Sequence record: OP889247.1 | DNA: 64,000 bases | Reading direction: 5' to 3' (one strand) | In this document: positions 3,811 to 59,148 of the stretch, in pieces | Position numbering within the stretch: the stretch's first letter is position 1 | How the letters are laid out: every line of letters begins with the position of its first letter | Position numbers and translations under genes: made by a program | Notes under the pieces: generated by a model | The model's input: the letters and a program-made list of their open reading frames with translations, nothing else | Databases searched by the model: none | What the model was told of the DNA's origin: nothing

Positions 3811-3844
3811 TTCTATAATTTTTCAAACCTATATTACCTAAGTG
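3811..3844 (+). promoter_or_regulatory. Early (virion RNAP) promoter of chimallin
   Basis: TTCTATAATTTTTCAAACCTATATTACCTAAGTG contains the phiKZ early motif TATATTAC (3830-3837) and aligns with five other copies. Confidence 0.8.
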
Positions 3845-3924: not shown

Positions 3925-5826
3925 ATGCAAGTTAACAACAACGAAAACAACGCTATGAACTCCACCCTGGGTCTGGGCACTTCTTCTAACGGTTCTGGTT
4001 CTCCTCTGGCTGCTCTGTTTGGTAGCACCAACCTGATCACTTCTTCTCACTCTGCTACCGAAGTTGCTGATGTGAGCAAGTACCTGCAAGAGAAAGTTAA
4101 AGAGCTGCTGGCTAACACTGCTCCTGAAATCCAGAAAGCAACTCTGCCGCGTTTCATGCAACAGCTGACCTCTGACATCACTCCGCATCTGCCGGGTATC
4201 GCAATGTACACCGTACTGGGTACTAGCTGCTACGTAATGCCGATCCTGTTCTACAAAGCAGGTATCACCGATGCTACCGATACCATCCAAATGGGTAACG
4301 AAGCTCCGCGTGGCTATGCTAAGACTCCGACTTCCTTCATGACCAATGACGTAATGAAGAAAGTTAAGGAAAGCTTCAAGGTCATCGATGGTAAGACCAT
4401 GACCAACGTCGTGATCACTGCACCGATGGTAATGAACCTGGAGCGTTATATCAAAGCCGGGATCACTGGTGAAGATATGGCTGCTAAAGTTGGTCACAAG
4501 CTGCTCAAAGAGTGGCAGACTGGCATTACCAACATGGCAGCTCTGGAAACTCAGAAAGCTGGTGGTCAACTGCCCAACCCGTTTGCTGGTGGTAAGCTGT
4601 TTGGTCAGCATGAAGCCGCTCTGGCTCGTGTTGAGTCTGTTCATCAACTGGTTGTTGATGGTCTGCCTGTTCCGTATAACCTGGCTGTTAAGCTGGCAAC
4701 TGCCAACAAGAACAACATGACCAACTACGGTAACAACACCGCCAAGACCATCCTGACAACTTACCTGAACGTCCAACTGGAAACTATGTCTCCAGGTCAG
4801 TTCAACGATGTCCGGGCTCGTAACCCTGGTCGTCCTTGCGGTCCGATCGTTCCGGTTGTTGTAGCTGGTATGTCCAACCCTGGTGAAACCCTGCATCACA
4901 ATAACTCCCTGATGACTCAACTGCTTGGTCTGTTCGCAAGTCTGGCAGCTAACGCTCCGGTGTTCTTCTCTGAAGCGTTCCGTGGTCAACAGGTTGGTAA
5001 CCGTGGTAACCTGGGTGTGTTCAACAACTACATGGCTTCTATTCTGGGTCCTGTATATGGTGCTGATCACAACCTCACCAACAAGAACATCACCAACATC
5101 GCAGTAACCAATGACTGGATCCAGCGTTATGTTGCTCCTCAAGCAGTATACGCAATCGATCTGATCGGTTATGTAGATGAAACCAGTAACAACGACTTCT
5201 GGTTCGGTATCACCTCTGGTGACAAGTCCTCTACCTACGTTCGCTCCATGATCTCCCTGTGTGATCTGCTGACCGGTGGTAAGTTCTCTGCCCTGGCTAA
5301 AGAGAACACTGAGAAAGGTGCAAACCGTGACAAGTCCAAAGAGTGGGCGTTTGGTGATGCAATCATGCACCGTACCAACATCATCCGTCCTTACGGTATC
5401 GCCAAGAAAGGTAATGCTTGGTTTGATCTGGGTGAAGTAGATGGCATGTTCCTGCGTCAGCCTGAGTACTACGGTACCAATGAAGTAGCGATCAACGAGT
5501 ACAACGCTCTGCTGCAAGGTAGCATGGGTAACATCGATACTCGTATCCGTCAGTACAACATCCTGAACCGCCTGCAAGCAATGTTCAATAACGATGTGAT
5601 CGTTGAAGGTTGGAGCCTGCGTTATGTATTTAACCAGTCCTTCTTCAACACCCTGGCTCAAGCAATGTCTGCTGCTGGTACTCTGTCTGTATCCGGTAAC
5701 AACGCAGCCGCTAACTGGACCATGCACGTTCAGAACGAAATCCTGAACATGACCATGGGTGCTAGCCTGTCTAACGCGCCGGTCACTCAGAACGTAATGA
5801 ACAACGTGATGTACACCCAGTTCTAA
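3925..5826 (+). CDS. chmA: Chimallin, major phage nuclear shell protein (phiKZ gp54 / 201phi2-1 gp105 family)
   Basis: 633 aa, lying between the DNA polymerase and nvRNAP beta' genes. Has an early promoter, very strong codon bias (CTG/GGT/ACC/AAC) and its own terminator. Confidence 0.88.
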   Translation: MQVNNNENNAMNSTLGLGTSSNGSGSPLAALFGSTNLITSSHSATEVADVSKYLQEKVKELLANTAPEIQKATLPRFMQQLTSDITPHLPGIAMYTVLGTSCYVMPILFYKAGITDATDTIQMGNEAPRGYAKTPTSFMTNDVMKKVKESFKVIDGKTMTNVVITAPMVMNLERYIKAGITGEDMAAKVGHKLLKEWQTGITNMAALETQKAGGQLPNPFAGGKLFGQHEAALARVESVHQLVVDGLPVPYNLAVKLATANKNNMTNYGNNTAKTILTTYLNVQLETMSPGQFNDVRARNPGRPCGPIVPVVVAGMSNPGETLHHNNSLMTQLLGLFASLAANAPVFFSEAFRGQQVGNRGNLGVFNNYMASILGPVYGADHNLTNKNITNIAVTNDWIQRYVAPQAVYAIDLIGYVDETSNNDFWFGITSGDKSSTYVRSMISLCDLLTGGKFSALAKENTEKGANRDKSKEWAFGDAIMHRTNIIRPYGIAKKGNAWFDLGEVDGMFLRQPEYYGTNEVAINEYNALLQGSMGNIDTRIRQYNILNRLQAMFNNDVIVEGWSLRYVFNQSFFNTLAQAMSAAGTLSVSGNNAAANWTMHVQNEILNMTMGASLSNAPVTQNVMNNVMYTQF

Positions 5827-5913: not shown

Positions 5914-7308
5914 ATGTCAACTTTAGCGAATGTACTTGAGCAATACCAAATACAACATCTTCTTCCAACCACTCTATTTGATAAAATCATTGGAGAGTCA
6001 GGTTATGTACCAGAAGGTGATGACGAAAGTTTTTATCAACCTCTTTATCCAGATATTGAAGATTTCAATTATCGGCATGATACCACTACAGTTCATCCGA
6101 TCTATCTGAATGATTTCGATTTTAATATAGAAGAAGATCGAGAAAAGATTACTGCTTTGCTACGTACTGAATATGAAGGAAACAATTTCGATACAGTAGC
6201 GAGTTGTACTTGTAAGAAACATCGTACTAATGCGTATCTTGGTACAAGTTTCGTTTGTGACAGTTGTGGAGATCCTGTTACTAAACCACTTGGTGAGAAG
6301 ATCGAAACCAAAGTCTGGCTTCGTACTCCCGCTAACGTGTCAGGGTTTATTAACCCAACTATTGCAGAGGTATTCTTTCGCAAACTCAATACCAAAACCC
6401 CTAAGGTGAATTTGGTTGAGTATTGGATTAACAAAGAGTTTAGAAATGAAAAACGGTTTAGAGACCCAAGTCATAGTGCGTTTAAAATAGCTTGTAAACT
6501 GGAAGCTTTCCGTTTGTCACTCAATATCGAATTTGGATATAACGAGTTCGTTGACAATATGGATTTGATTATCAGATCAGCTATTGAACACGACACTAAT
6601 GGTGTTCTTGATCTTACCGAAAAGAACCGTGAACATTATGCGATGTTCTGGGAAAAATTCAAATCAAGAGCTGTAGCTCAATATCTCCCTTTGCCTAACA
6701 AGGTAACCTCTATTGTCGAGTCTGACCAACGAGATAAATACGTTAATAAGGAGAAGAGTGATCTTGAAAAGATCTTTTACACCATTGCTGATATGTATCC
6801 GGCTTATGACTATCGTTCTACTGAGAACGCAGAGATCATGGGGAAGATCTTTACTAAACTCAAAAGCATGATGTTGGATGTAACTGAATCTATCCTATTC
6901 AAGAAGAAAGGGATGATTCGTTATCACGCTGGTGCCGGTAAGTTACCGATGACTGGTCGTTCTATCATCACAGGCGAATCTGGTGTTTGTCGGTCAGACA
7001 CTATTATTGTTCCCTGGTTGTACGGAATTACGTGTCTGGATAAACACCTAACCAACTGGTTGTATCGTAAAGGCTACACTCCACTAAAAGTAAAGGAGAT
7101 TATCCGCTCAGCTGCTAACTTTAAACATCCTGTTGTAGAGGAGTTCTTTAACTGGGTAGAAAGTAATCGATACGCTATTGCAACGTGCGGTCGAAATCCC
7201 TCTATTCAGTATTTGTCGGCACGTGGTTTCTTTGTACAATTTAACCGCGATGTAGAAGATAAATCCATCCGGATTCCGATTACTACAGTTAAGGAATTTA
7301 ATGCCGAT
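5914..7308 (+). CDS. Non-virion RNA polymerase beta' N-terminal subunit, exon 1 (phiKZ gp55-like)
   Basis: Zn-finger CTC..CDSC, then GKLPMTGRSII and GRNPSI, ending KEFNAD at T7308. This is the first half of the NADFDGD catalytic motif. Confidence 0.9.
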
Positions 7309-8776
7309 AAACACACTAACACTCACCACTGCCAAAGGTGAGAATGAAACTACTCAGAAATTTAATAAAATCCATTAGACTTTATTATCCCGGTTATAGA
7401 AAGATAATAGGTCTTCCTGGATTAATACATCCTATTTTGGATATAGTGTATGAATTAAAGGTATTAGCCCCTGGGTTGATTGTCCCTATCGAAGTCCCAT
7501 TGCAAAAGGGTCAGTATGTCGGTGTTACAATAGCCGGTTCAAACCACCATTTACATAGATTAAAGGCTGAACGGTTTTTACCAAAACCGATTGGAGTTAA
7601 AGACAAATTAATTATCAATCATAAAGACGGTAAAAAGGCCAACAATTCAATAGAAAACTACGAATGGGTTAGTTATTCTGATAATATTGTTCATGCTTAT
7701 AAATCTGGGCTTAGAAGTGACAACATCTCAGGAACAATGTATGACCTTATAAATCTCACTACTTACGATTTTTATTCGTATGCTGACCTATCTAGACATT
7801 TAAAAGTCAACCCTAGCTATGTGACGTATTACATGAAACGTCCGCGCGATTACCCGTTTAGACGAAGATATGTGATAGTCCCAACTGGTAGTGAAAAACC
7901 CAACATAACTAAGGATGATATTTGGAAATCCAATGAAAATTTTGGAAATCCAATAAGCGTTCTGGATACGGTTACCAATGAAATTACCAAATTTGGTAAT
8001 TTTGCTAGCATGGTGAAAACTCTAGGTCTTAAATACCACCAAAGAGAAAAGTTCTTTCCTGGAAAGGAGTATGTTTTCGGTAACGGAAGACATATAGTAA
8101 CATTAATGACCGAGTATAACGAAATCATATCAACACTTAATTCAGACCCTAACTTTTCTACCCGTGATTATAGTCATTTAAACTATAAGAAGGAAAGAAA
8201 TAAAGTTAAAGTGTCTTACCCAAACGGTGATGTGAAAATATTCAAAAATGTTGAAGTGGCGGCTAGAGAGTTAGGAAGCACAGACGCCGCTTTATCAAAA
8301 AGAATACATTCGTTCAAAGGTCTTTGGAAAGGACATGTATTAACTTATATCTGAGTGTTAGTGTAATAGTCCCCCTAGGGTGAAAGTCCTAGTGAGGTAC
8401 CTTTTGAATTGCTGGAAAGTCCACAAAAGTTACTTACCTAAGCTTAATTAGAAATGATTAAGTTAATGGTGTCGAAAGACAGAAACAACAAGTAACCTGT
8501 CCTATGCTAAAAAATAATGCTAAGGGATATTAACAAGGGATAATCAGCCTCCGAGAATCTAAGTATATTCGTGATGAATAGATACGATTCAGGTTCAACG
8601 ACTGTCCCGTGGCTGGGAGTAGGGAAATCAGATTTCCTGAAGTATTAGGCACCTAACCGTGTAAAGACGTAGGTGATGGTATAGTCTGCTCCTCTAGTAA
8701 TGTAGAGGCGGGTGTCTTAGCACACCGGCGTTATTATGATAGCCAAATGGCGAACGGTAATAACGTGGACATAAGG
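7309..8776 (+). mobile_element. Group I self-splicing intron (1468 nt) with HNH homing endonuclease
   Basis: Preceded by U (7308) and ends in G (8776). Core elements: P AATTGCTGGAAA (~8407), Q AATCAGC (~8542), R GTTCAACGACTG (~8593), S TATAGTC (~8680). Removal restores in-frame NAD|FDGD. Confidence 0.9.
7338..8354 (+). CDS. Intron-encoded HNH homing endonuclease
   Basis: HRL..AERF...NHKDGKKANNSIENYEWVSYSDNIVHA HNH motif, followed by NUMOD/IENR-like DNA-binding segments; located inside the intron. Confidence 0.88.
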   Translation: MRMKLLRNLIKSIRLYYPGYRKIIGLPGLIHPILDIVYELKVLAPGLIVPIEVPLQKGQYVGVTIAGSNHHLHRLKAERFLPKPIGVKDKLIINHKDGKKANNSIENYEWVSYSDNIVHAYKSGLRSDNISGTMYDLINLTTYDFYSYADLSRHLKVNPSYVTYYMKRPRDYPFRRRYVIVPTGSEKPNITKDDIWKSNENFGNPISVLDTVTNEITKFGNFASMVKTLGLKYHQREKFFPGKEYVFGNGRHIVTLMTEYNEIISTLNSDPNFSTRDYSHLNYKKERNKVKVSYPNGDVKIFKNVEVAARELGSTDAALSKRIHSFKGLWKGHVLTYI

Positions 8777-8971
8777 TTCGATGGTGATAACATGTATCTA
8801 TTCTTTATCCCAGATATGGTGGGTAAAGTAAATGCATATAGTAACTGGGGGCACCATCAAATGGTTGATCCTAACAAGCCGTTTAAAACAAGTAGATTTG
8901 TTGCCGCAACACGGACTAATCTCTTAAATATAAATAGCGTGCTTCTTAATACACCGATTGAGGAGGACTAA
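8777..8971 (+). CDS. nvRNAP beta' N-terminal subunit, exon 2 (phiKZ gp56.1-like)
   Basis: Begins FDGDNMYLFF directly after the intron's terminal G and completes the DFDGD Mg-binding motif. Confidence 0.88.
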   Translation, partial: FDGDNMYLFFIPDMVGKVNAYSNWGHHQMVDPNKPFKTSRFVAATRTNLLNINSVLLNTPIEED

Positions 8972-9620
8972 TTTGAACGTAACATCAGCTTTCAATAGAG
9001 GTTGTGGTGGAAGCTTGAGTAGTGAAGCTGCTCAGGTCTACGATAACTTCGTAGGAAATATGTTACAGAAATACGATAACTTAACTGGATGGTTGAGTGA
9101 AACTGTAGATTCTGTAAAGAAAGCTCATAGTAACTTTATGTCTTCTAAGATGTGGGAGTTCTCTAACCGTATTGGTAGAACAGGACACTACGTAGGAAGA
9201 TTCGAAATCGGTTATCTGTCGGAAGTTCAATTCCAACAACAAGCCACTGGGTTTATGCGTAATTACATTATGGCTAACCCTAACATGATGGCGTTGTATG
9301 AAACTGAACAAGTCTCTGGATATGATGGAGATTTCTCTGACCTGTGTTCTGGTATCGGTCATGGTAATTATTACTATGATAAAGCTATGGATGGGTTGGT
9401 TACTCAAAATGAGAGTGATCAATACTTCTATCGCACTTACCATAATTCAATGGACGAAGGTACACACCTAAGTCCTAGAGAACGCTTCGATATTCAACGT
9501 ACTTGGCGTGCAACCGATCACCATATTAAGAACTTGTTTGACTCGTCAAACATTGCGGGTGGAAACATTCTTACCTTGGAAGAAGTTGAAGAACGTCGTA
9601 AAGCAGAAGACAAAGAGTAA
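8958..9620 (+). CDS. Conserved phiKZ-like hypothetical protein
   Basis: 220-aa ORF overlapping the end of exon 2, followed by a terminator. Confidence 0.7.
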   Translation: MRRTNLNVTSAFNRGCGGSLSSEAAQVYDNFVGNMLQKYDNLTGWLSETVDSVKKAHSNFMSSKMWEFSNRIGRTGHYVGRFEIGYLSEVQFQQQATGFMRNYIMANPNMMALYETEQVSGYDGDFSDLCSGIGHGNYYYDKAMDGLVTQNESDQYFYRTYHNSMDEGTHLSPRERFDIQRTWRATDHHIKNLFDSSNIAGGNILTLEEVEERRKAEDKE

Positions 9621-9627
9621 TTAAACT

Positions 9628-9662
9628 GAACTACCTGAGGAGCTATCCTTGGGTAGTTCTTT
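9628..9662 (+). terminator. Stem-loop terminator
   Basis: GAACTACCTGAGGA-GCTA-TCCTTGGGTAGTTC (two G-U pairs) followed by TTT. Confidence 0.65.
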
Positions 9663-9693
9663 ATCTACTTTAAAAAATTAAGGAAATAGACAA

Positions 9694-10020
9694 ATGAAAC
9701 AAGTTCATAAAGACGATATTTGTGTCGTAACACGCTCTGAAGTTGATGTTAATCGTTACTATGGACGTGGTAATAAAAACAAACTTAATTTTCCAATGTT
9801 GAAATTTCAAGATAGTAGTGAGGTCATTAACGAGAATGGATTCACTTTAGAAGGTGTTATCGCTTGCACTATCGATCGTTTGGAACACTTTAATACTGGA
9901 CAGTTTAAATGTGATCACAACGATCGTGCTTTGGAACATCTTCGCGGTGCATTGAAAGAACTTAATGACCGAGTAGAGGATCGTAAAGCGCGAAATGTTT
10001 ACAACACCGACAAAGCTTAG
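9694..10020 (+). CDS. tad1: Tad1-family cyclic-nucleotide sponge (anti-Thoeris / anti-CBASS)
   Basis: KFQ..(N)G...DRL..F..G.F.C..N..AL.HL..AL..LN.RVEDR..RNV..T matches the Tad1 signature as recalled (e.g. RVEDRIERNVLGT). Confidence 0.8.
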   Translation: MKQVHKDDICVVTRSEVDVNRYYGRGNKNKLNFPMLKFQDSSEVINENGFTLEGVIACTIDRLEHFNTGQFKCDHNDRALEHLRGALKELNDRVEDRKARNVYNTDKA

Positions 10021-10028
10021 GAGTTAAC

Positions 10029-10517
10029 ATGGGTGCTGGATACGCCTCTTTCCAGATGGATTTGAAAAGTGCTGTAGCGATTAATACAGCAATTGAAAAA
10101 GAAGAGATTAAGTGTGCTGATGACTTTCACGAGAAGTTAGCAACTAAGATTAACATTGTAGCTAATGATCTTCACGCAACATTGATGTATGACAAACGAG
10201 ATCCGGATATTAGCCCAGGAATCAATCGTAAATCATACAAAGCTAAGGTAATCGACGTAGAGAAGCTAGGAGTACCCGGTAAGCAATTCTACGCCCTAGT
10301 CCTTACTCTTGAGTCAGAAGAGATCCAGAAACGTTTTAAAGAGCTCCTAGATCTTGGGTTTGAACACTCTTTCCCAGAGCTTAAACTCCATTGTAGTTTG
10401 TATTATGGGGATGGAACTGAACTGTGTTATAAGTTCATGAAACGTTTGTTCGATGAAGGTAAACTGCCAGAATACATTACACTTTGTAATGAGAACTGGA
10501 ATGCTTGCAAAGACTAA
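10029..10517 (+). CDS. acb1: Acb1-family 2H phosphodiesterase (anti-CBASS nuclease, T4 gp57B-like)
   Basis: Two HxT/S motifs (LHATLMY, LHCSLYY), plus LVLTLES, LGFEHSF and a C-terminal E..W lid, as in T4 Acb1. Confidence 0.82.
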   Translation: MGAGYASFQMDLKSAVAINTAIEKEEIKCADDFHEKLATKINIVANDLHATLMYDKRDPDISPGINRKSYKAKVIDVEKLGVPGKQFYALVLTLESEEIQKRFKELLDLGFEHSFPELKLHCSLYYGDGTELCYKFMKRLFDEGKLPEYITLCNENWNACKD

Positions 10518-10525
10518 CATTTAAG

Positions 10526-10559
10526 ATCCATAGATTTTCAAACCTATATTACTAGAGTG
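10526..10559 (+). promoter_or_regulatory. Early promoter
   Basis: ATCCATAGATTTTCAAACCTATATTACTAGAGTG; 10520-10554 is identical to 34340-34374. Confidence 0.8.
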
Positions 10560-10611
10560 ATAAATAGAATATGTATTTTCAACTCTACAGATATAGATAA
10601 GGAATCTCATC

Positions 10612-10755
10612 ATGACTTCAGGTCAATACTTCGGACTCGCTTTCTTTGCCCCTATGATGGTAGTTACCTTCTCTATGTTGGGTTTCTATTATTATAACCG
10701 GTGGAAAGAAAACAAAGCTAAGAAAGGTCCTATGGCTACCTTTAATAAGCGTTAA
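10612..10755 (+). CDS. Small single-pass membrane protein (47 aa), absent from the ORF track
   Basis: AAGGA SD, then MTSGQYFGLAFFAPMMVVTFSMLGFYYYNRWKENKAKKGPMATFNKR*; lies between an early promoter and a hairpin. Confidence 0.72.
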   Translation: MTSGQYFGLAFFAPMMVVTFSMLGFYYYNRWKENKAKKGPMATFNKR

Positions 10756-10763
10756 GTTATACG

Positions 10764-10793
10764 TTGCTACTCTCCCAATTGGGAGAGTAGCAA
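10764..10793. terminator. Perfect 30-bp palindrome / terminator
   Basis: TTGCTACTCTCCC-AATT-GGGAGAGTAGCAA. Confidence 0.7.
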
Positions 10794-10837
10794 TATTAAG
10801 AATGATAAATTTTTTGTTTAAATTTAAGGAGTAGTGT

Positions 10838-11251
10838 ATGCCAAAAGGTGTAGTTGCTACCATGGATACTTTAGGATATGTTAAAGAACCTACCGTAAAG
10901 ATAGATCGACTCATTGCATATTGGTTTGCAAACCGTATTGATCAATCTATTATCCTCACTGGTATTTATAGTTATCAATATGTTGTTGCAAGACATCAGA
11001 ACGATTTCCAGATTGATAACTTTATTAAAGATATGGAAGAAAGTTTACGTTCCTATCTTTTAGAGTGTTTCACAGGTGTCGAAGTGGTGGTTAGATCACC
11101 AGATTACGAACCAGTTAAAAAGATGTTTACATTAGCAGTATCTGGACAAGTAGAAGAAGACGGTAAGCTGTATGATTTAGCAACGTCAGTTTCTGTTAAT
11201 GGTAAGACATTCGAATTAATTCAAAAAGGAAGGAAAGAATATGCAAGGTAA
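10838..11251 (+). CDS. Conserved hypothetical protein
   Basis: AAGGAG SD, 137 aa, first gene of a run of overlapping ORFs. Confidence 0.7.
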   Translation: MPKGVVATMDTLGYVKEPTVKIDRLIAYWFANRIDQSIILTGIYSYQYVVARHQNDFQIDNFIKDMEESLRSYLLECFTGVEVVVRSPDYEPVKKMFTLAVSGQVEEDGKLYDLATSVSVNGKTFELIQKGRKEYAR

Positions 11252-12053
11252 AGAAGTTGCAGGTTTTGAAGGGGTTGATAAATTCGCTCACGGTGATTTG
11301 TTCGAATTCCTAAGTAAGACCTTTGCTTATACAGAAGTGGCTGGACAACGTGTTATTCAAACACCAGATGGTCTATTTGTAGAACACGTGTTGATGGAAG
11401 AAGAGTACTTCGTAGAGAACTGGTTGTCTCAGTTCGCCATTGGTCACGCTGGCGATAAGAACTACTTCGATATGGAGACTTGGAACCAGCTTACTGATAA
11501 CTTCACCAAAGGTGTAATTGTTATCAATGAACAACGTCACCCGGTTCTGATTATTCGCAAGTTCACCGAGATGGTACTACCCGAAGATCTAATGGAGAAA
11601 CTCGCCTTTTGCAGTAACTATGCTTCTAAAGCCAAGTTTGTTACTGACGAAGCTGAAAAGACGGCTTTGATCAAACAGTTTGCTGAACAAGTCAATGCTA
11701 TCACTAACTACGCTGGGGTAGATGAGGATTCTCTAACTAGTTTGATCCCTCCTGCATTCTACGATAAACACAATGTACATCCGCTCACAATGAAACAATT
11801 GATCTACATTCGTGATACGTATAAAGTAGCTGGTCAATCTATCGATCCTGATGGTGATATCTTCAAACGTCTTGAAACCATTATTACTAGATTTAATAAA
11901 GGTGAAAAGATCAACGAGTCCGATAAGAAGTTTGTTCTTGATATTACCCAAAATGAATTTCTTTTTGACTACGAAGACCATTCGGTAGAAGAATCAATTT
12001 CAATCGAAAAAACACCGTCAGAACCTGAAGAATTTGATCCACTTGCGGATTAA
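11241..12053 (+). CDS. Conserved hypothetical protein with acidic C-terminus
   Basis: 270-aa ORF overlapping the upstream stop, with an AAGGA SD. Confidence 0.7.
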   Translation: MQGKEVAGFEGVDKFAHGDLFEFLSKTFAYTEVAGQRVIQTPDGLFVEHVLMEEEYFVENWLSQFAIGHAGDKNYFDMETWNQLTDNFTKGVIVINEQRHPVLIIRKFTEMVLPEDLMEKLAFCSNYASKAKFVTDEAEKTALIKQFAEQVNAITNYAGVDEDSLTSLIPPAFYDKHNVHPLTMKQLIYIRDTYKVAGQSIDPDGDIFKRLETIITRFNKGEKINESDKKFVLDITQNEFLFDYEDHSVEESISIEKTPSEPEEFDPLAD

Positions 12054-14784: not shown

Positions 14785-14806
14785 GAAAAACTTTTAACAC
14801 ATTTAA

Positions 14807-14833
14807 AGAGAGAAGGCTTAAAGCCTTCTCTCT
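14807..14833 (+). terminator. Intrinsic terminator
   Basis: AGAGAGAAGGC-TTAAA-GCCTTCTCTCT after the stop codon. Confidence 0.7.
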
Positions 14834-14852
14834 ATTATATCTATTTTTACTG

Positions 14853-14886
14853 TTCTATATTTTTTCAGATAGATATTATTTAAGTG
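14853..14886 (+). promoter_or_regulatory. Early-type promoter (GATATTAT variant)
   Basis: TTCTATATTTTTTCAGATAGATATTATTTAAGTG aligns without gaps to the chimallin promoter. Confidence 0.65.
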
Positions 14887-14899
14887 TTATTCTAGGGGA

Positions 14900-16510
14900 G
14901 TGTTTAAAATGCGCTATAGCACTGTACTTTCTGGGAAACGACGGATTGATTCTGTTGTCGTTTCTCACAATAATGAACAGATTGAATTTAAGGGAACACA
15001 AACAGTTTGCGGTGGTGATGCCGACCAAGAGTTGTTTGAATTCATGAACATCTTCTTTGAAGGTTGTCGTGATAGTACAATGGATCAATTGTGGAATTTG
15101 TTTAAGGAAGGTAAACGAATTCTTCAGCCTGGTTATTTCGAGGAAGCAGAAACTGCCGAATTATCAGAACTTCGCGAACGTAGTTTGGATTATCAGTTCC
15201 TAATCGAGAAGCTGAGTCCTATTATCAAACGTATGTATGAGCTGGTCACACCCAATGAGATTGCTTACGCAGCGCAAGTAACAGGTCGTACTGTGGCACC
15301 TAAAGACTTGATGCGTATGGCGGCAATGGGGGACTATCCAGAAGAGACCACTATTGATAATGACAAGTATGCTGAGTTGGTTAAACTAGCTTTCACAGCT
15401 CAACTTTGTTTCCCTCTTATTAACCAGTTGTTAGATCAGATCAACGAGGTAACTGGTAAAGAGTATCAGTACGCAGTAGTAGGTAGTATGATTTCTCAAA
15501 TCCCTAGTATCGTAGAGATACCTGGTTGGAAAATCATGGATACATATATCCGCGCTAGCTGTGCTCGCAAAGATAGTAAACGGGAAAATACCGACGTAGT
15601 ATCTGAGGAACGATATGTAGATTATATCGTATTCGAGGGACTGTTTAGTAAACTCTCTTTGTCATTTATACCAAGTCAGCTCAAAGACAAGAACTTGTCC
15701 AAAGAGTTAAACTCGTTAGTAGAAGGAAAGATCCGTAAAGAACAATCTACTAAGTTTACACGGTTCTCTGAAAGTAAACCAGGTAGTGACGATCAATCAA
15801 TTCCTGAAAGTTATCGTATTGCCCAAACAGTAAACGGTTCTGACGAAGAAGCGATGGCGGAGTTCTTCTCATTTGGGATGTTTGATGAAGAAGATAAACC
15901 CCGTTATAAAGACATCTTTAAACACCAAGCAAAAGCCCTTGGAATTAAAGCTGAGAAAACTGTGGAGAAGTTGTTCCATAATCTTCCAACTGTTTGGGAT
16001 TTTCGTTTCACTAACATTCAGAATCAATTACTCCAGTTAGCATTTATTGATGATATTAACTATTATCTTTATCCTGCTATGGATTATCGACAGCTAACTG
16101 CCGCAATGTGTTTAGCACAAGTTAAACTATTTGAACAAGGTTATGAGCATCTTGCTCAATTAGTCTGTGCTATGCGTTCTAACGCTGTTCCAATTACTTA
16201 CATGGGGGATGAATTCAAACTCTCTACCAAAGAGCGAGAAGATCTAATTGATCTGTGTTATATCTATGTGGGGCAATCCACTGCTAGTACAGATAACATG
16301 TTAGTGATGTCGGTACAATCCTTCCTAGATGAATTAGCGGCTTCTGGGTGGGAATCTAATATTGAACCAGGATTATTGGGAAATCAGAAGTTTCTTGATG
16401 CAATGTCACCTGGTGACATGTATCCCATTGATCTAGTACCAGAGATTAAACGTGAGTTACTTGCGTTGATTACTCAAACCCATAGTGTAGAAAAAGAAAA
16501 CGAGGAATAA
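14900..16510 (+). CDS. nvRNAP promoter-specificity (sigma-like) subunit, phiKZ gp68-like
   Basis: 536 aa, helical; synteny and size match gp68. Confidence 0.75.
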   Translation: MFKMRYSTVLSGKRRIDSVVVSHNNEQIEFKGTQTVCGGDADQELFEFMNIFFEGCRDSTMDQLWNLFKEGKRILQPGYFEEAETAELSELRERSLDYQFLIEKLSPIIKRMYELVTPNEIAYAAQVTGRTVAPKDLMRMAAMGDYPEETTIDNDKYAELVKLAFTAQLCFPLINQLLDQINEVTGKEYQYAVVGSMISQIPSIVEIPGWKIMDTYIRASCARKDSKRENTDVVSEERYVDYIVFEGLFSKLSLSFIPSQLKDKNLSKELNSLVEGKIRKEQSTKFTRFSESKPGSDDQSIPESYRIAQTVNGSDEEAMAEFFSFGMFDEEDKPRYKDIFKHQAKALGIKAEKTVEKLFHNLPTVWDFRFTNIQNQLLQLAFIDDINYYLYPAMDYRQLTAAMCLAQVKLFEQGYEHLAQLVCAMRSNAVPITYMGDEFKLSTKEREDLIDLCYIYVGQSTASTDNMLVMSVQSFLDELAASGWESNIEPGLLGNQKFLDAMSPGDMYPIDLVPEIKRELLALITQTHSVEKENEE

Positions 16511-20034: not shown

Positions 20035-20068
20035 CCCTATAATATTTCAGACCGATATTATTAGAATG
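20035..20068 (+). promoter_or_regulatory. Early-type promoter of the nvRNAP beta/beta' operon
   Basis: CCCTATAATATTTCAGACCGATATTATTAGAATG aligns with the other five copies. Confidence 0.65.
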
Positions 20069-28372: not shown

Positions 28373-28380
28373 ACATACAT

Positions 28381-28420
28381 AAGTTCCCTACCTAACCTTA
28401 ATTGGTTAGGTAGGGAACTT
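28381..28420. terminator. Bidirectional terminator
   Basis: AAGTTCCCTACCTAACC-TTAATT-GGTTAGGTAGGGAACTT, 17-bp stem between convergent genes. Confidence 0.8.
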
Positions 28421-28437
28421 CATATCACTTTTTCTAT

Positions 28438-34284: not shown

Positions 34285-34294
34285 TGCGTAAATT

Positions 34295-34330
34295 ACCTTA
34301 CCTAACCGTAATTGGTTAGGTAAGGTTTAT
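34295..34330 (+). terminator. Intrinsic terminator
   Basis: ACCTTACCTAACC-GTAATT-GGTTAGGTAAGGT followed by TTAT. Confidence 0.75.
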
Positions 34331-34345
34331 GTATCTAATTTTAAG

Positions 34346-34379
34346 ATCCATAGATTTTCAAACCTATATTACTATAGTG
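34346..34379 (+). promoter_or_regulatory. Early promoter
   Basis: ATCCATAGATTTTCAAACCTATATTACTATAGTG; a 35-bp block is identical to the 10520 copy. Confidence 0.8.
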
Positions 34380-34438
34380 TATAAACATAAGAGATTCTTT
34401 AATCTCTTCAACCTTTAAGTATAGAGAAGGAATATAGC

Positions 34439-35144: not shown

Positions 35145-35151
35145 TATCTAA

Positions 35152-35183
35152 AGTTACCTACTCCCAACTGGGAGTAGGTAACT
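35152..35183 (+). terminator. Stem-loop terminator
   Basis: AGTTACCTACTCCC-AACT-GGGAGTAGGTAACT. Confidence 0.72.
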
Positions 35184-35211
35184 AATAATAGTTTATATTT
35201 TTTTTTACTCT

Positions 35212-35245
35212 TTCTATAATTTCTTAAACCGATATTATTAAACTG
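35212..35245 (+). promoter_or_regulatory. Early-type promoter
   Basis: TTCTATAATTTCTTAAACCGATATTATTAAACTG aligns with the other copies. Confidence 0.68.
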
Positions 35246-35282
35246 TAGTAAACAATATATGTATTTCAAAGGAGTATAGAAA

Positions 35283-44846: not shown

Positions 44847-44854
44847 ATAACATA

Positions 44855-44888
44855 AACTCTCTACTCCCTTAATTGGGAGTAGAGAGTT
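44855..44888. terminator. Bidirectional terminator
   Basis: AACTCTCTACTCCC-TTAATT-GGGAGTAGAGAGTT between convergent stop codons. Confidence 0.78.
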
Positions 44889-44898
44889 ACTTTTATGT

Positions 44899-59067: not shown

Positions 59068-59077
59068 ACATAACGTT

Positions 59078-59113
59078 ACTCTACCTAACCATAAACGGTT
59101 AGGTAGAGTTGTT
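59078..59113 (+). terminator. Intrinsic terminator
   Basis: ACTCTACCTAACC-ATAAAC-GGTTAGGTAGAGT followed by TGTTT. Confidence 0.75.
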
Positions 59114-59120
59114 TACCCAG

Positions 59121-59129
59121 ATGTTATGA
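59121..59129 (+). promoter_or_regulatory. Candidate late (TATG-type) promoter
   Basis: ATGTTATGA between the terminator and the SD of the next structural operon. Confidence 0.45.
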
Positions 59130-59148
59130 AAACACCATATAGGAGTGG

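Follow-up and report, generated by a model that had tools for sequence, protein, structure and literature searches.

Restriction and DNA-targeting CRISPR systems are kept out by the shell of nucleus-forming phages, and this makes such phages attractive for therapy. Their exposed flank is signalling-based abortive infection, such as Thoeris, the antiphage signalling system based on cyclic oligonucleotides (CBASS) and type III CRISPR with NucC. The question raised by the locus described here is whether two small adjacent genes could cover this flank. The locus lies in a window of 64,000 nucleotides (nt), the whole stretch of DNA that was analysed, which comes from Aeromonas phage AVP1 (OP889247.1, 234 kb, genus Ferozepurvirus). 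A sequence-only reading of this window had taken the phage for a nucleus-forming one and the two genes for a Tad1-like sponge gene and, directly behind it, an Acb1-like 2H phosphodiesterase gene. Our comparisons support this core, and for the first gene the support also comes from a structural model. Both open reading frames (ORFs) are annotated as hypothetical proteins in the GenBank record:

9694–10020, plus strand: gene 1 (AVP1_0189), Tad1-family sponge gene, 108 amino acids (aa), assigned by phmmer, family profile, AlphaFold2 model, Foldseek and pocket residues
10029–10517, plus strand: gene 2 (AVP1_0190), Acb1-family 2H phosphodiesterase gene, 162 aa, assigned by Pfam PF23474, family profile and HxT/HxS tetrad

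Family assignment of the two genes

The string of motifs from which gene 1 had been named is common to gene 1 and CbTad1 (KFQ, G, DRL, F, G.F, N, AL.H, AL, N.RVEDR and RNV). In a single-sequence phmmer search of the PDB sequences, residues 33–106 aligned to CbTad1 (7uav and the 8kb-series entries) with an E-value of 1.3e-6, and only Tad1 entries were significant. An exhaustive profile search over 1.84 billion representatives gave 1,451 relatives of gene 1. The family profile, made from 118 of them, matched the CbTad1 and CmTad1 structures at full length (E 1.6e-30 to 1.4e-28) and matched no Acb2 structure in the PDB.

The AlphaFold2 model on the 118 homologues was confident, with a predicted local distance difference test score (pLDDT) of 93.9 and a predicted TM-score (pTM) of 0.82. 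It replaced an earlier model on 7 close homologues, which was poor (pLDDT 61, and below 50 in the N-terminal half). The model has strands at residues 2–6, 10–14, 21–26 and 36–38 and helices at 52–66 and 74–99, so it shows the architecture described for Tad1 in the literature, with an antiparallel beta-sheet in the N-terminal part and two long helices in the C-terminal part. When the model was compared with the PDB by Foldseek, the top 20 matches were all Tad1 (TM-score on the query, TMq, 0.74–0.85; probability 1.00), and the next match had an E-value of 0.26. Structure prediction and profile comparison had been proposed as checks of the Tad1 assignment, and they returned a confident model and significant matches to Tad1 only. 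By profile homology and predicted fold, gene 1 is a Tad1-family protein. No second Tad1 copy was detected in AVP1.

Acb2 shares the hairpin domain with Tad1 and was considered as another identity for gene 1. It was rejected, because no Acb2 was found by profile or by significant fold match and the N-terminal sheet is Tad1-like. A direct Pfam scan of gene 1 gave no family at E up to 1, and a precomputed match to PF24729 (Acb2/Tad1 hairpin) was reproduced in only 6 of the 118 family members. The NCBIfam scan gave nothing useful for either protein.

Mutation of F82, N92, R109 and R113 in CbTad1 is reported to abolish the binding of glycocyclic ADP-ribose (gcADPR) and 2',3'-cyclic GMP-AMP (cGAMP). 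In the pairwise alignment these residues correspond to F66, N76, R93 and R97 of gene 1, and all four are kept. None of them varies among the 7 close homologues, and among the 118 family representatives they are found in 82 (F66), 116 (N76), 118 (R93) and 115 (R97). Among the close homologues, the protein varies most in the loops around the pocket (residues 25–46).

These variable loops would fit a Tad1-fold protein with another role, either as a sponge for another ligand or as a virion or structural protein like the precursor phiKZ gp184. The wide ligand diversity among sponge families in the literature points the same way, and gp184 itself is a protein of the capsid inner surface that carries a Tad1 domain. 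However, the gene 1 protein has just 108 aa without an N-terminal capsid-anchoring region, and it conserves every one of the gcADPR/cGAMP-binding residues, so we regard such another role as quite improbable.

For gene 2, the proposed comparison of hidden Markov models (HMMs) with Acb1 gave a clear answer. The protein matched Pfam PF23474 (Acb1) with 51.8 bits (E 9.7e-14), where the cut-off is 27, and this was the sole Pfam family at E up to 1. The family profile, made from 14 homologues, matched only Acb1 entries among 177,635 PDB sequences. These were 7t26 (E 1.5e-7), the Acb1 of Erwinia phage FBB1, and 9q2g (E 1.6e-6) and 9q2y (E 4.3e-5), the recently described PDE-9; positions 22–121 of the profile align to 7t26 and 15–134 to 9q2g. 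The HAT and HCS motifs that had suggested a 2H phosphoesterase are present as H49-A-T51 and H121-C-S123. They align to both H-x-T motifs of FBB1 Acb1, and H49, T51, H121 and S123 are invariant in the 14 homologues; the HxT tetrad is catalytic in Acb1. Published accounts give Acb1 a compact 2H fold, in which a U-shaped pocket goes with a lid and with aromatic residues that stack on the bases (Y12, W74 and F107). In the homologues of gene 2, the aromatic residues Y5 and W157 never vary, and F111 hardly does. Judging from its Pfam, profile and motif matches, gene 2 is an Acb1-family 2H phosphodiesterase.

Existing labels tell another story, in which gene 2 would be no immune-signal nuclease but an RNA-repair or 2',3'-cyclic phosphodiesterase/LigT-like enzyme. 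PHROG 755 is annotated as "RNA ligase", the records of Pseudomonas phage OBP, Klebsiella phage N1M2, Edwardsiella phage pEt-SU and Kosakonia phage Kc263 label the counterpart as RNA ligase or RNA 2',3'-cyclic phosphodiesterase, and the HxT/S motifs are common to all 2H enzymes. The "RNA ligase" label is probably older than the discovery of Acb1. Against these labels, no LigT or 2',5'-RNA-ligase family appeared in Pfam at E up to 1, Acb1 alone stood well above its cut-off, and the family profile found nothing but Acb1 in the PDB. A LigT-like enzyme is therefore very improbable.

Linkage, neighbourhood and conservation of the pair

The features around the pair to which the following text refers are:

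10018–10031, plus strand: gene junction, GCT TAG GAG TTAAC ATG, in which the TAG stop and the AGGAG ribosome-binding site overlap and 5 nt lie between that site and the ATG
9628–9659, plus strand: terminator-like hairpin after the 220-aa gene and directly upstream of the pair, with a 14-bp stem and a 4-nt loop
10536–10553, plus strand: promoter-like 18-mer TTTCAAACCTATATTACT, which opens the next transcription unit (small membrane protein gene 10612–10755)
10612–10755: small ORF of 47 aa, hydrophobic-looking, directly downstream of the pair
3925–5826, plus strand: chimallin homologue, 51% identity over 265 aa with the protein of Aeromonas phage AerS_266 annotated as chimallin

Only 8 nt separate gene 1 and gene 2. 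The tight linkage, with the TAG stop overlapping the Shine-Dalgarno sequence TAGGAG, can be read directly from the sequence as had been noted, and it suggests translational coupling of the pair.

A tblastn search with both proteins against 50,697 phage records found Tad1 and Acb1 abutting in the same order in each of the 19 records of Aeromonas jumbo phages (13 distinct phages). The same arrangement was found in OBP, N1M2, Serratia phages Sureiya and Yubaba, and Shewanella phage SXP01. So the pair, for which a check in related jumbo phages had been proposed, is present in 18 distinct jumbo phages of at least 5 genera, with gaps of about 0–9 nt. The gap between the two genes is -1 to 9 nt in AerS_266, D6, OBP and N1M2. 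These four phages also have a common block, which runs from chimallin through the gp55-like polymerase subunit, the 220-aa protein, Tad1, Acb1, the small membrane protein, a virion protein and one further gene to an SbcD-like nuclease. The pair predates the split of at least 5 genera. The sequence-only reading had regarded it as an inserted module; a recent insertion in AVP1 was rejected on the ground of this synteny.

The nucleus-forming context was also examined. The region 8700–11300, which agrees with AVP1 at 100%, is 93–96% identical to phages pAEv1810, ACP1, PS1 and PS2, and the genus Ferozepurvirus was assigned to the nucleus-forming family Chimalliviridae in the 2025 Z90 paper. The chimallin candidate had no phmmer match to solved chimallin in the PDB sequences, so its identity comes from transitive homology and position, that is, from the AerS_266 homologue and from the phiKZ gp55 homologue next door. 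This neighbour, the ORF 5914–7341 directly downstream of the chimallin gene, matches phiKZ gp55 (7ogp, E 5.6e-32), which is a subunit of the non-virion RNA polymerase (nvRNAP). The window thus holds the two marks of Chimalliviridae, chimallin (via its annotated homologue) and phiKZ-type split RNA polymerases, and both genes lie about 4 kb upstream of the pair. The claim of a nucleus-forming phage agrees with the chimallin homologue, the gp55-like subunit and the placement of the genus, and AVP1 is predicted to form a nucleus. The location in the chimallin block suggests early co-expression of the pair.

The gp55-like polymerase gene of AVP1 is split into exons 5914–7341 and 8747–8971 by an insert at 7342–8746, and the second exon matches the C-terminal end of an RNA polymerase beta-subunit PHROG. 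The insert carries an HNH/NUMOD1 endonuclease ORF (7344–8354) and matches the group I intron model RF00028 over its full length (49.9 bits, with a gathering score of 50; E 3.5e-11), the ribozyme core lying at 8347–8707. The counterpart gene is uninterrupted, with about 530 codons, in OBP, N1M2 and D6. The split gene resembles the RNA polymerase gene of PhiPA3, within which an intron endonuclease has reportedly been described.

Putative transcription signals flank the pair. A terminator had been placed before it, and the hairpin at 9628–9659 is indeed terminator-like. Its minimum free energy is -22.1 kcal/mol (z = -5.69), none of 200 shuffles was as stable, and the tail on its 3' side is T-rich but interrupted. 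By eye, a hairpin with a T-run stands at the same position in D6, OBP and N1M2. Long perfect hairpins are found after many genes of the window, and their stems and loops are alike, for example ..CTACCTAACC-TTAATTGG-GGTTAGGTAG.. and ..CTACTCCC-AATTGG-GAGTAG... Examples lie in the intergenic regions 294–455, 10756–10837, 28373–28437, 34285–34438, 35145–35282, 44847–44898 and 59068–59148. They look like a related terminator family and not like independent ones.

Downstream of the pair stands the 18-mer TTTCAAACCTATATTACT. With at most 3 mismatches allowed, the window has 4 copies of it where 0.17 would be expected. Each copy is intergenic and on the plus strand (3821–3838, just upstream of the chimallin gene; 10536–10553; 20045–20062; 34356–34373). 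They are good evidence that the next unit starts with a promoter-type element of the phage. Of the early promoter claimed at this place, the promoter-like element stands, and the word "early" depends on the copy before chimallin. The 8-mer TATATTAC was tried as the early promoter and rejected, since it was not enriched (6 found against 3.45 expected) and a literature search gave no lead. The 18-mer is part of an intergenic repeat of about 35 nt (roughly TCTATAAT..TTTCAAACCTATATTACT.(A)GTG), which stands on the plus strand upstream of genes in every copy; looser copies lie inside 14785–14908 and 35145–35282. This element is probably a promoter class of a phage RNA polymerase. The small gene at the position of 10612–10755 was present in every genus examined.

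Natural variants of the pair were found as well. Edwardsiella phage pEt-SU, which belongs to the genus of OBP, has Acb1 without Tad1, and its Acb1 gene begins 96 nt after the 220-aa gene (locus L008, 2892–2989). Erwinia phage AH04 (L007, 2725–3450) and Kosakonia phage Kc263 (L009, 2719–3456) have single ORFs of 241 and 245 codons, in which a Tad1-like N-terminal remnant of about 90 residues is in frame with a complete Acb1. This remnant is 22–27% identical to the Tad1 of AVP1, and the segment with the pocket arginines R93 and R97 is missing from it. In PS1 (L002, 2412–3615), an insert of 1.2 kb lies between the 220-aa gene and Tad1. It consists of a 40-codon duplicate of the 5' end of Tad1 and then a 347-aa ORF, and an intact, divergent Tad1 gene comes next. 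The 347-aa ORF was read by eye as an HNH homing endonuclease, and the arrangement suggests a homing-endonuclease insertion with co-conversion at the Tad1 locus.

The comparison of AVP1 with PS1 also showed different rates of change. Here dN and dS are the non-synonymous and synonymous divergences. For Tad1, dN was 0.10 and dN/dS 0.20 in this single pairwise comparison, and for Acb1 and three other flanking genes dN was 0.006–0.013 and dN/dS 0.02–0.04. Non-synonymous divergence of Tad1 is thus about 10 times that of Acb1 and of three of the other four flanking genes. The remaining one, the gene of the 47-aa membrane protein, had 85% amino-acid identity, dN 0.089 and dN/dS 0.13. On this one comparison, Tad1 would be under purifying but relaxed or diversifying selection, and the allele may have been exchanged. 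Arms-race genes typically diverge in this way. Of the two partners, Acb1 is stable, and Tad1 is fast-evolving and dispensable.

Some Tad1 domains stand at the C-terminus of longer proteins, on jumbo-size contigs of IMG/VR (L012, 1951–3198; L016, 2212–3198; L021, 2035–3186). Two of the three have, by eye, a cyclophilin-like (peptidyl-prolyl isomerase) N-terminal domain. The N-terminal region of the third resembles what is annotated as major head protein in jumbo phages of Ralstonia and Burkholderia, and this protein may be another packaged Tad1 like phiKZ gp184. A second, packaged Tad1 in Kc263 was considered and rejected: the L021 protein had no match of at least 60% identity among the collected phages, and L021 is therefore another phage.

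Proposed function of the pair

From family membership, the Tad1 fold of the model, key residues, linkage and conservation, we infer ligands, expression timing and a division of labour as follows. Our explanation, which we hold with good confidence, is a co-expressed, probably translationally coupled counter-defence pair that removes nucleotide alarm signals. Both proteins would work in the cytoplasm of the host, where their targets would be small-molecule alarm signals, and the chimallin shell could not stop these signals because host sensors and effectors stay outside the shell. The free-standing Tad1, with its intact pocket of F66, N76, R93 and R97, would sequester the gcADPR of Thoeris and some cyclic dinucleotides of CBASS. 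Acb1, with its HxT/HxS tetrad, would cut the 3'-5' bonds of CBASS cyclic di- and trinucleotides and possibly those of cyclic triadenylate (cA3) of type III CRISPR. The pair would be an ancient fixture of the chimallin/nvRNAP block in the OBP-like, Aeromonas and enterobacterial subclade of Chimalliviridae.

Several points weigh against this explanation. The first concerns the ligands of the sponge. In CbTad1, R90 and T97 hold the phosphates of cyclic trinucleotides and help to build the hexamer. Their counterparts in gene 1 are the acidic residues D74 and E81, and the alignment runs ungapped from N76 to E81. All 5 intact Chimalliviridae homologues aligned have an acidic residue at position 81, and E or D is common at positions 74 and 81 among the 118 nearest representatives; Li et al. 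found such substitutions at the trinucleotide site in only about 6% of Tad1 homologues. Tad1 is known as a hexamer (a trimer of dimers), and its interface residues overlap the substituted site. Cyclic-trinucleotide binding is a secondary activity of the Tad1 family and not its defining feature. On its residues, gene 1 should bind gcADPR and/or cyclic dinucleotides, and trinucleotide binding is not predicted. So, of the coverage of gcADPR and cyclic oligonucleotides that had been claimed for the pair, the part of the sponge would stand for gcADPR and cyclic dinucleotides, whose pocket residues are kept, and would fall for cyclic trinucleotides. Coverage of cA3 and the type III CRISPR signal would rest on Acb1 and not on the sponge, because the counterparts of R90 and T97 are replaced.

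A second point is that enzymes of the Acb1 group differ markedly in substrate range (PDE-9, for example, avoids 2'3'-c-di-AMP), and for this reason the exact substrates of gene 2 cannot be inferred from its family. Thirdly, no promoter motif of the 18-mer type lies between the hairpin 9628–9659 and gene 1. It means that the pair would be read through the hairpin or from an unrecognised signal. Fourthly, 48 of 49 Tad1 loci from IMG/VR had no Acb1 within 3 kb by an Acb1 HMM that is clade-specific and may miss distant Acb1, and the sole locus with Acb1 at this distance was OBP itself. The Tad1-Acb1 pairing is not a general property of Tad1.

Finally, conserved adjacency within a fully syntenic block is by itself no proof of functional coupling. 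Both genes could be anti-defence genes as named and yet be neighbours without functional meaning, held together since their ancestor by the synteny of the chimallin/nvRNAP block. The whole neighbourhood from chimallin to the SbcD-like gene is syntenic across genera, Tad1 was lost while Acb1 remained in pEt-SU, and the IMG/VR loci just mentioned agree with this account. Such neighbours are also common, since in an AntiDefenseFinder survey about 18% of phage anti-defence systems had another one within 1 kb. It is, however, hard to fit with the constant spacing of 0–9 nt and the Shine-Dalgarno sequence over the stop in every lineage, with the in-frame fusion of a Tad1 remnant to Acb1 in two genera (AH04 and Kc263), and with an Acb1 that would supply the activity of the trinucleotide site missing from Tad1. 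We give adjacency without meaning a substantial chance, of the order of one in three.

For the counter-defence pair, a division of labour is plausible, because Acb1 is reported not to cleave 3',2'-cGAMP or cGG, Tad1 binds 3',2'-cGAMP, and this Tad1 would have no trinucleotide site. A stronger form is conceivable, in which an interdependent sequester-plus-degrade unit evolved in the nucleus-forming subclade. The sponge would have dropped its trinucleotide site as Acb1 handles those signals, and would specialise in gcADPR, 3'2'-cGAMP and cGG-type signals; the AH04 and Kc263 fusions would be a further step, with the sponge-derived domain being regulatory or substrate-capturing. We think this form is unlikely.

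Significance and comparison with known systems

Tad1 and Acb1 are well-characterised families, and the co-localisation of anti-defence genes is a known pattern. In the GenBank record of AerS_266, the two neighbouring genes already bear the labels "Anti-Thoeris" and "Anti-CBASS", and the AerS_266 paper contains no discussion of them. A 2026 review names phiKZ Tad1 as the only anti-defence protein described in jumbo phages. In the literature we found no description of a conserved Tad1-Acb1 tandem in this subclade, of its Tad1 loss and fusion variants, or of the contrast with the injected phiKZ form. These three things are the new content, which is modest. The pair is a clade-specific two-gene anti-defence islet that extends known families, and it brings no new principle. 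It would not surprise a specialist, and it is useful for the field of jumbo-phage counter-defence as a natural series for comparison. In a large subclade (Aeromonas phages, Pseudomonas phage OBP, and Klebsiella, Serratia and Shewanella phages), Tad1 is free-standing and coupled to Acb1 next to the chimallin gene. This points to a second deployment route for Tad1, made after infection as opposed to injected, and the natural loss, decay and fusion variants are open to direct comparison.

Among known systems, the AVP1 protein is like the solved and studied Tad1 proteins (CbTad1, 7UAV, 7UAW and 8SMD; CmTad1, 8KBB; SBSphiJ7 Tad1) in fold, in full-length profile homology and in the gcADPR/cyclic-dinucleotide pocket. 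It differs in length, with 108 aa against 123–138 aa of the solved chains, in the beta4-alpha1 loop that carries R57 in CbTad1 and is shortened in AVP1, and in having D74/E81 where CbTad1 has R90/T97 at the cyclic-trinucleotide contacts.

The Tad1 of phiKZ, also a member of Chimalliviridae, is an experimentally established anti-Thoeris and anti-CBASS protein. It is made as gp184, a capsid-anchored precursor of 230 aa, from which the head protease frees the Tad1 part that is injected. The family profile of AVP1 Tad1 detects gp184 (E 1.9e-22), so both nucleus-forming jumbo phages have a Tad1 domain. In contrast to gp184, the AVP1 protein stands free, has to be synthesised after infection and adjoins Acb1 in the chimallin block.

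Gene 2 is like Acb1 (T4 gp57B; Erwinia phage FBB1, 7T26 and 7T27) and the 2H enzyme PDE-9 (9Q2G) in Pfam family, catalytic tetrad and size. Its second motif is HxS, whereas that of Acb1 is HxT, and its similarity to the solved members is low, with an E-value of 1e-7 only via the profile. In these members the lid is C-terminal (FBB1 and T4 Acb1) or N-terminal (PDE-9).

The arrangement as a whole recalls anti-defence islands such as acb1/acb2 of T4, in which likewise two anti-signalling counter-defence genes lie within 1 kb of each other. T4 combines a degrading enzyme (Acb1) with sponges. Compared with such islands, the AVP1 pair is fixed and tightly abutted in a core gene block, its order is conserved across genera, and in two of them it is fused.

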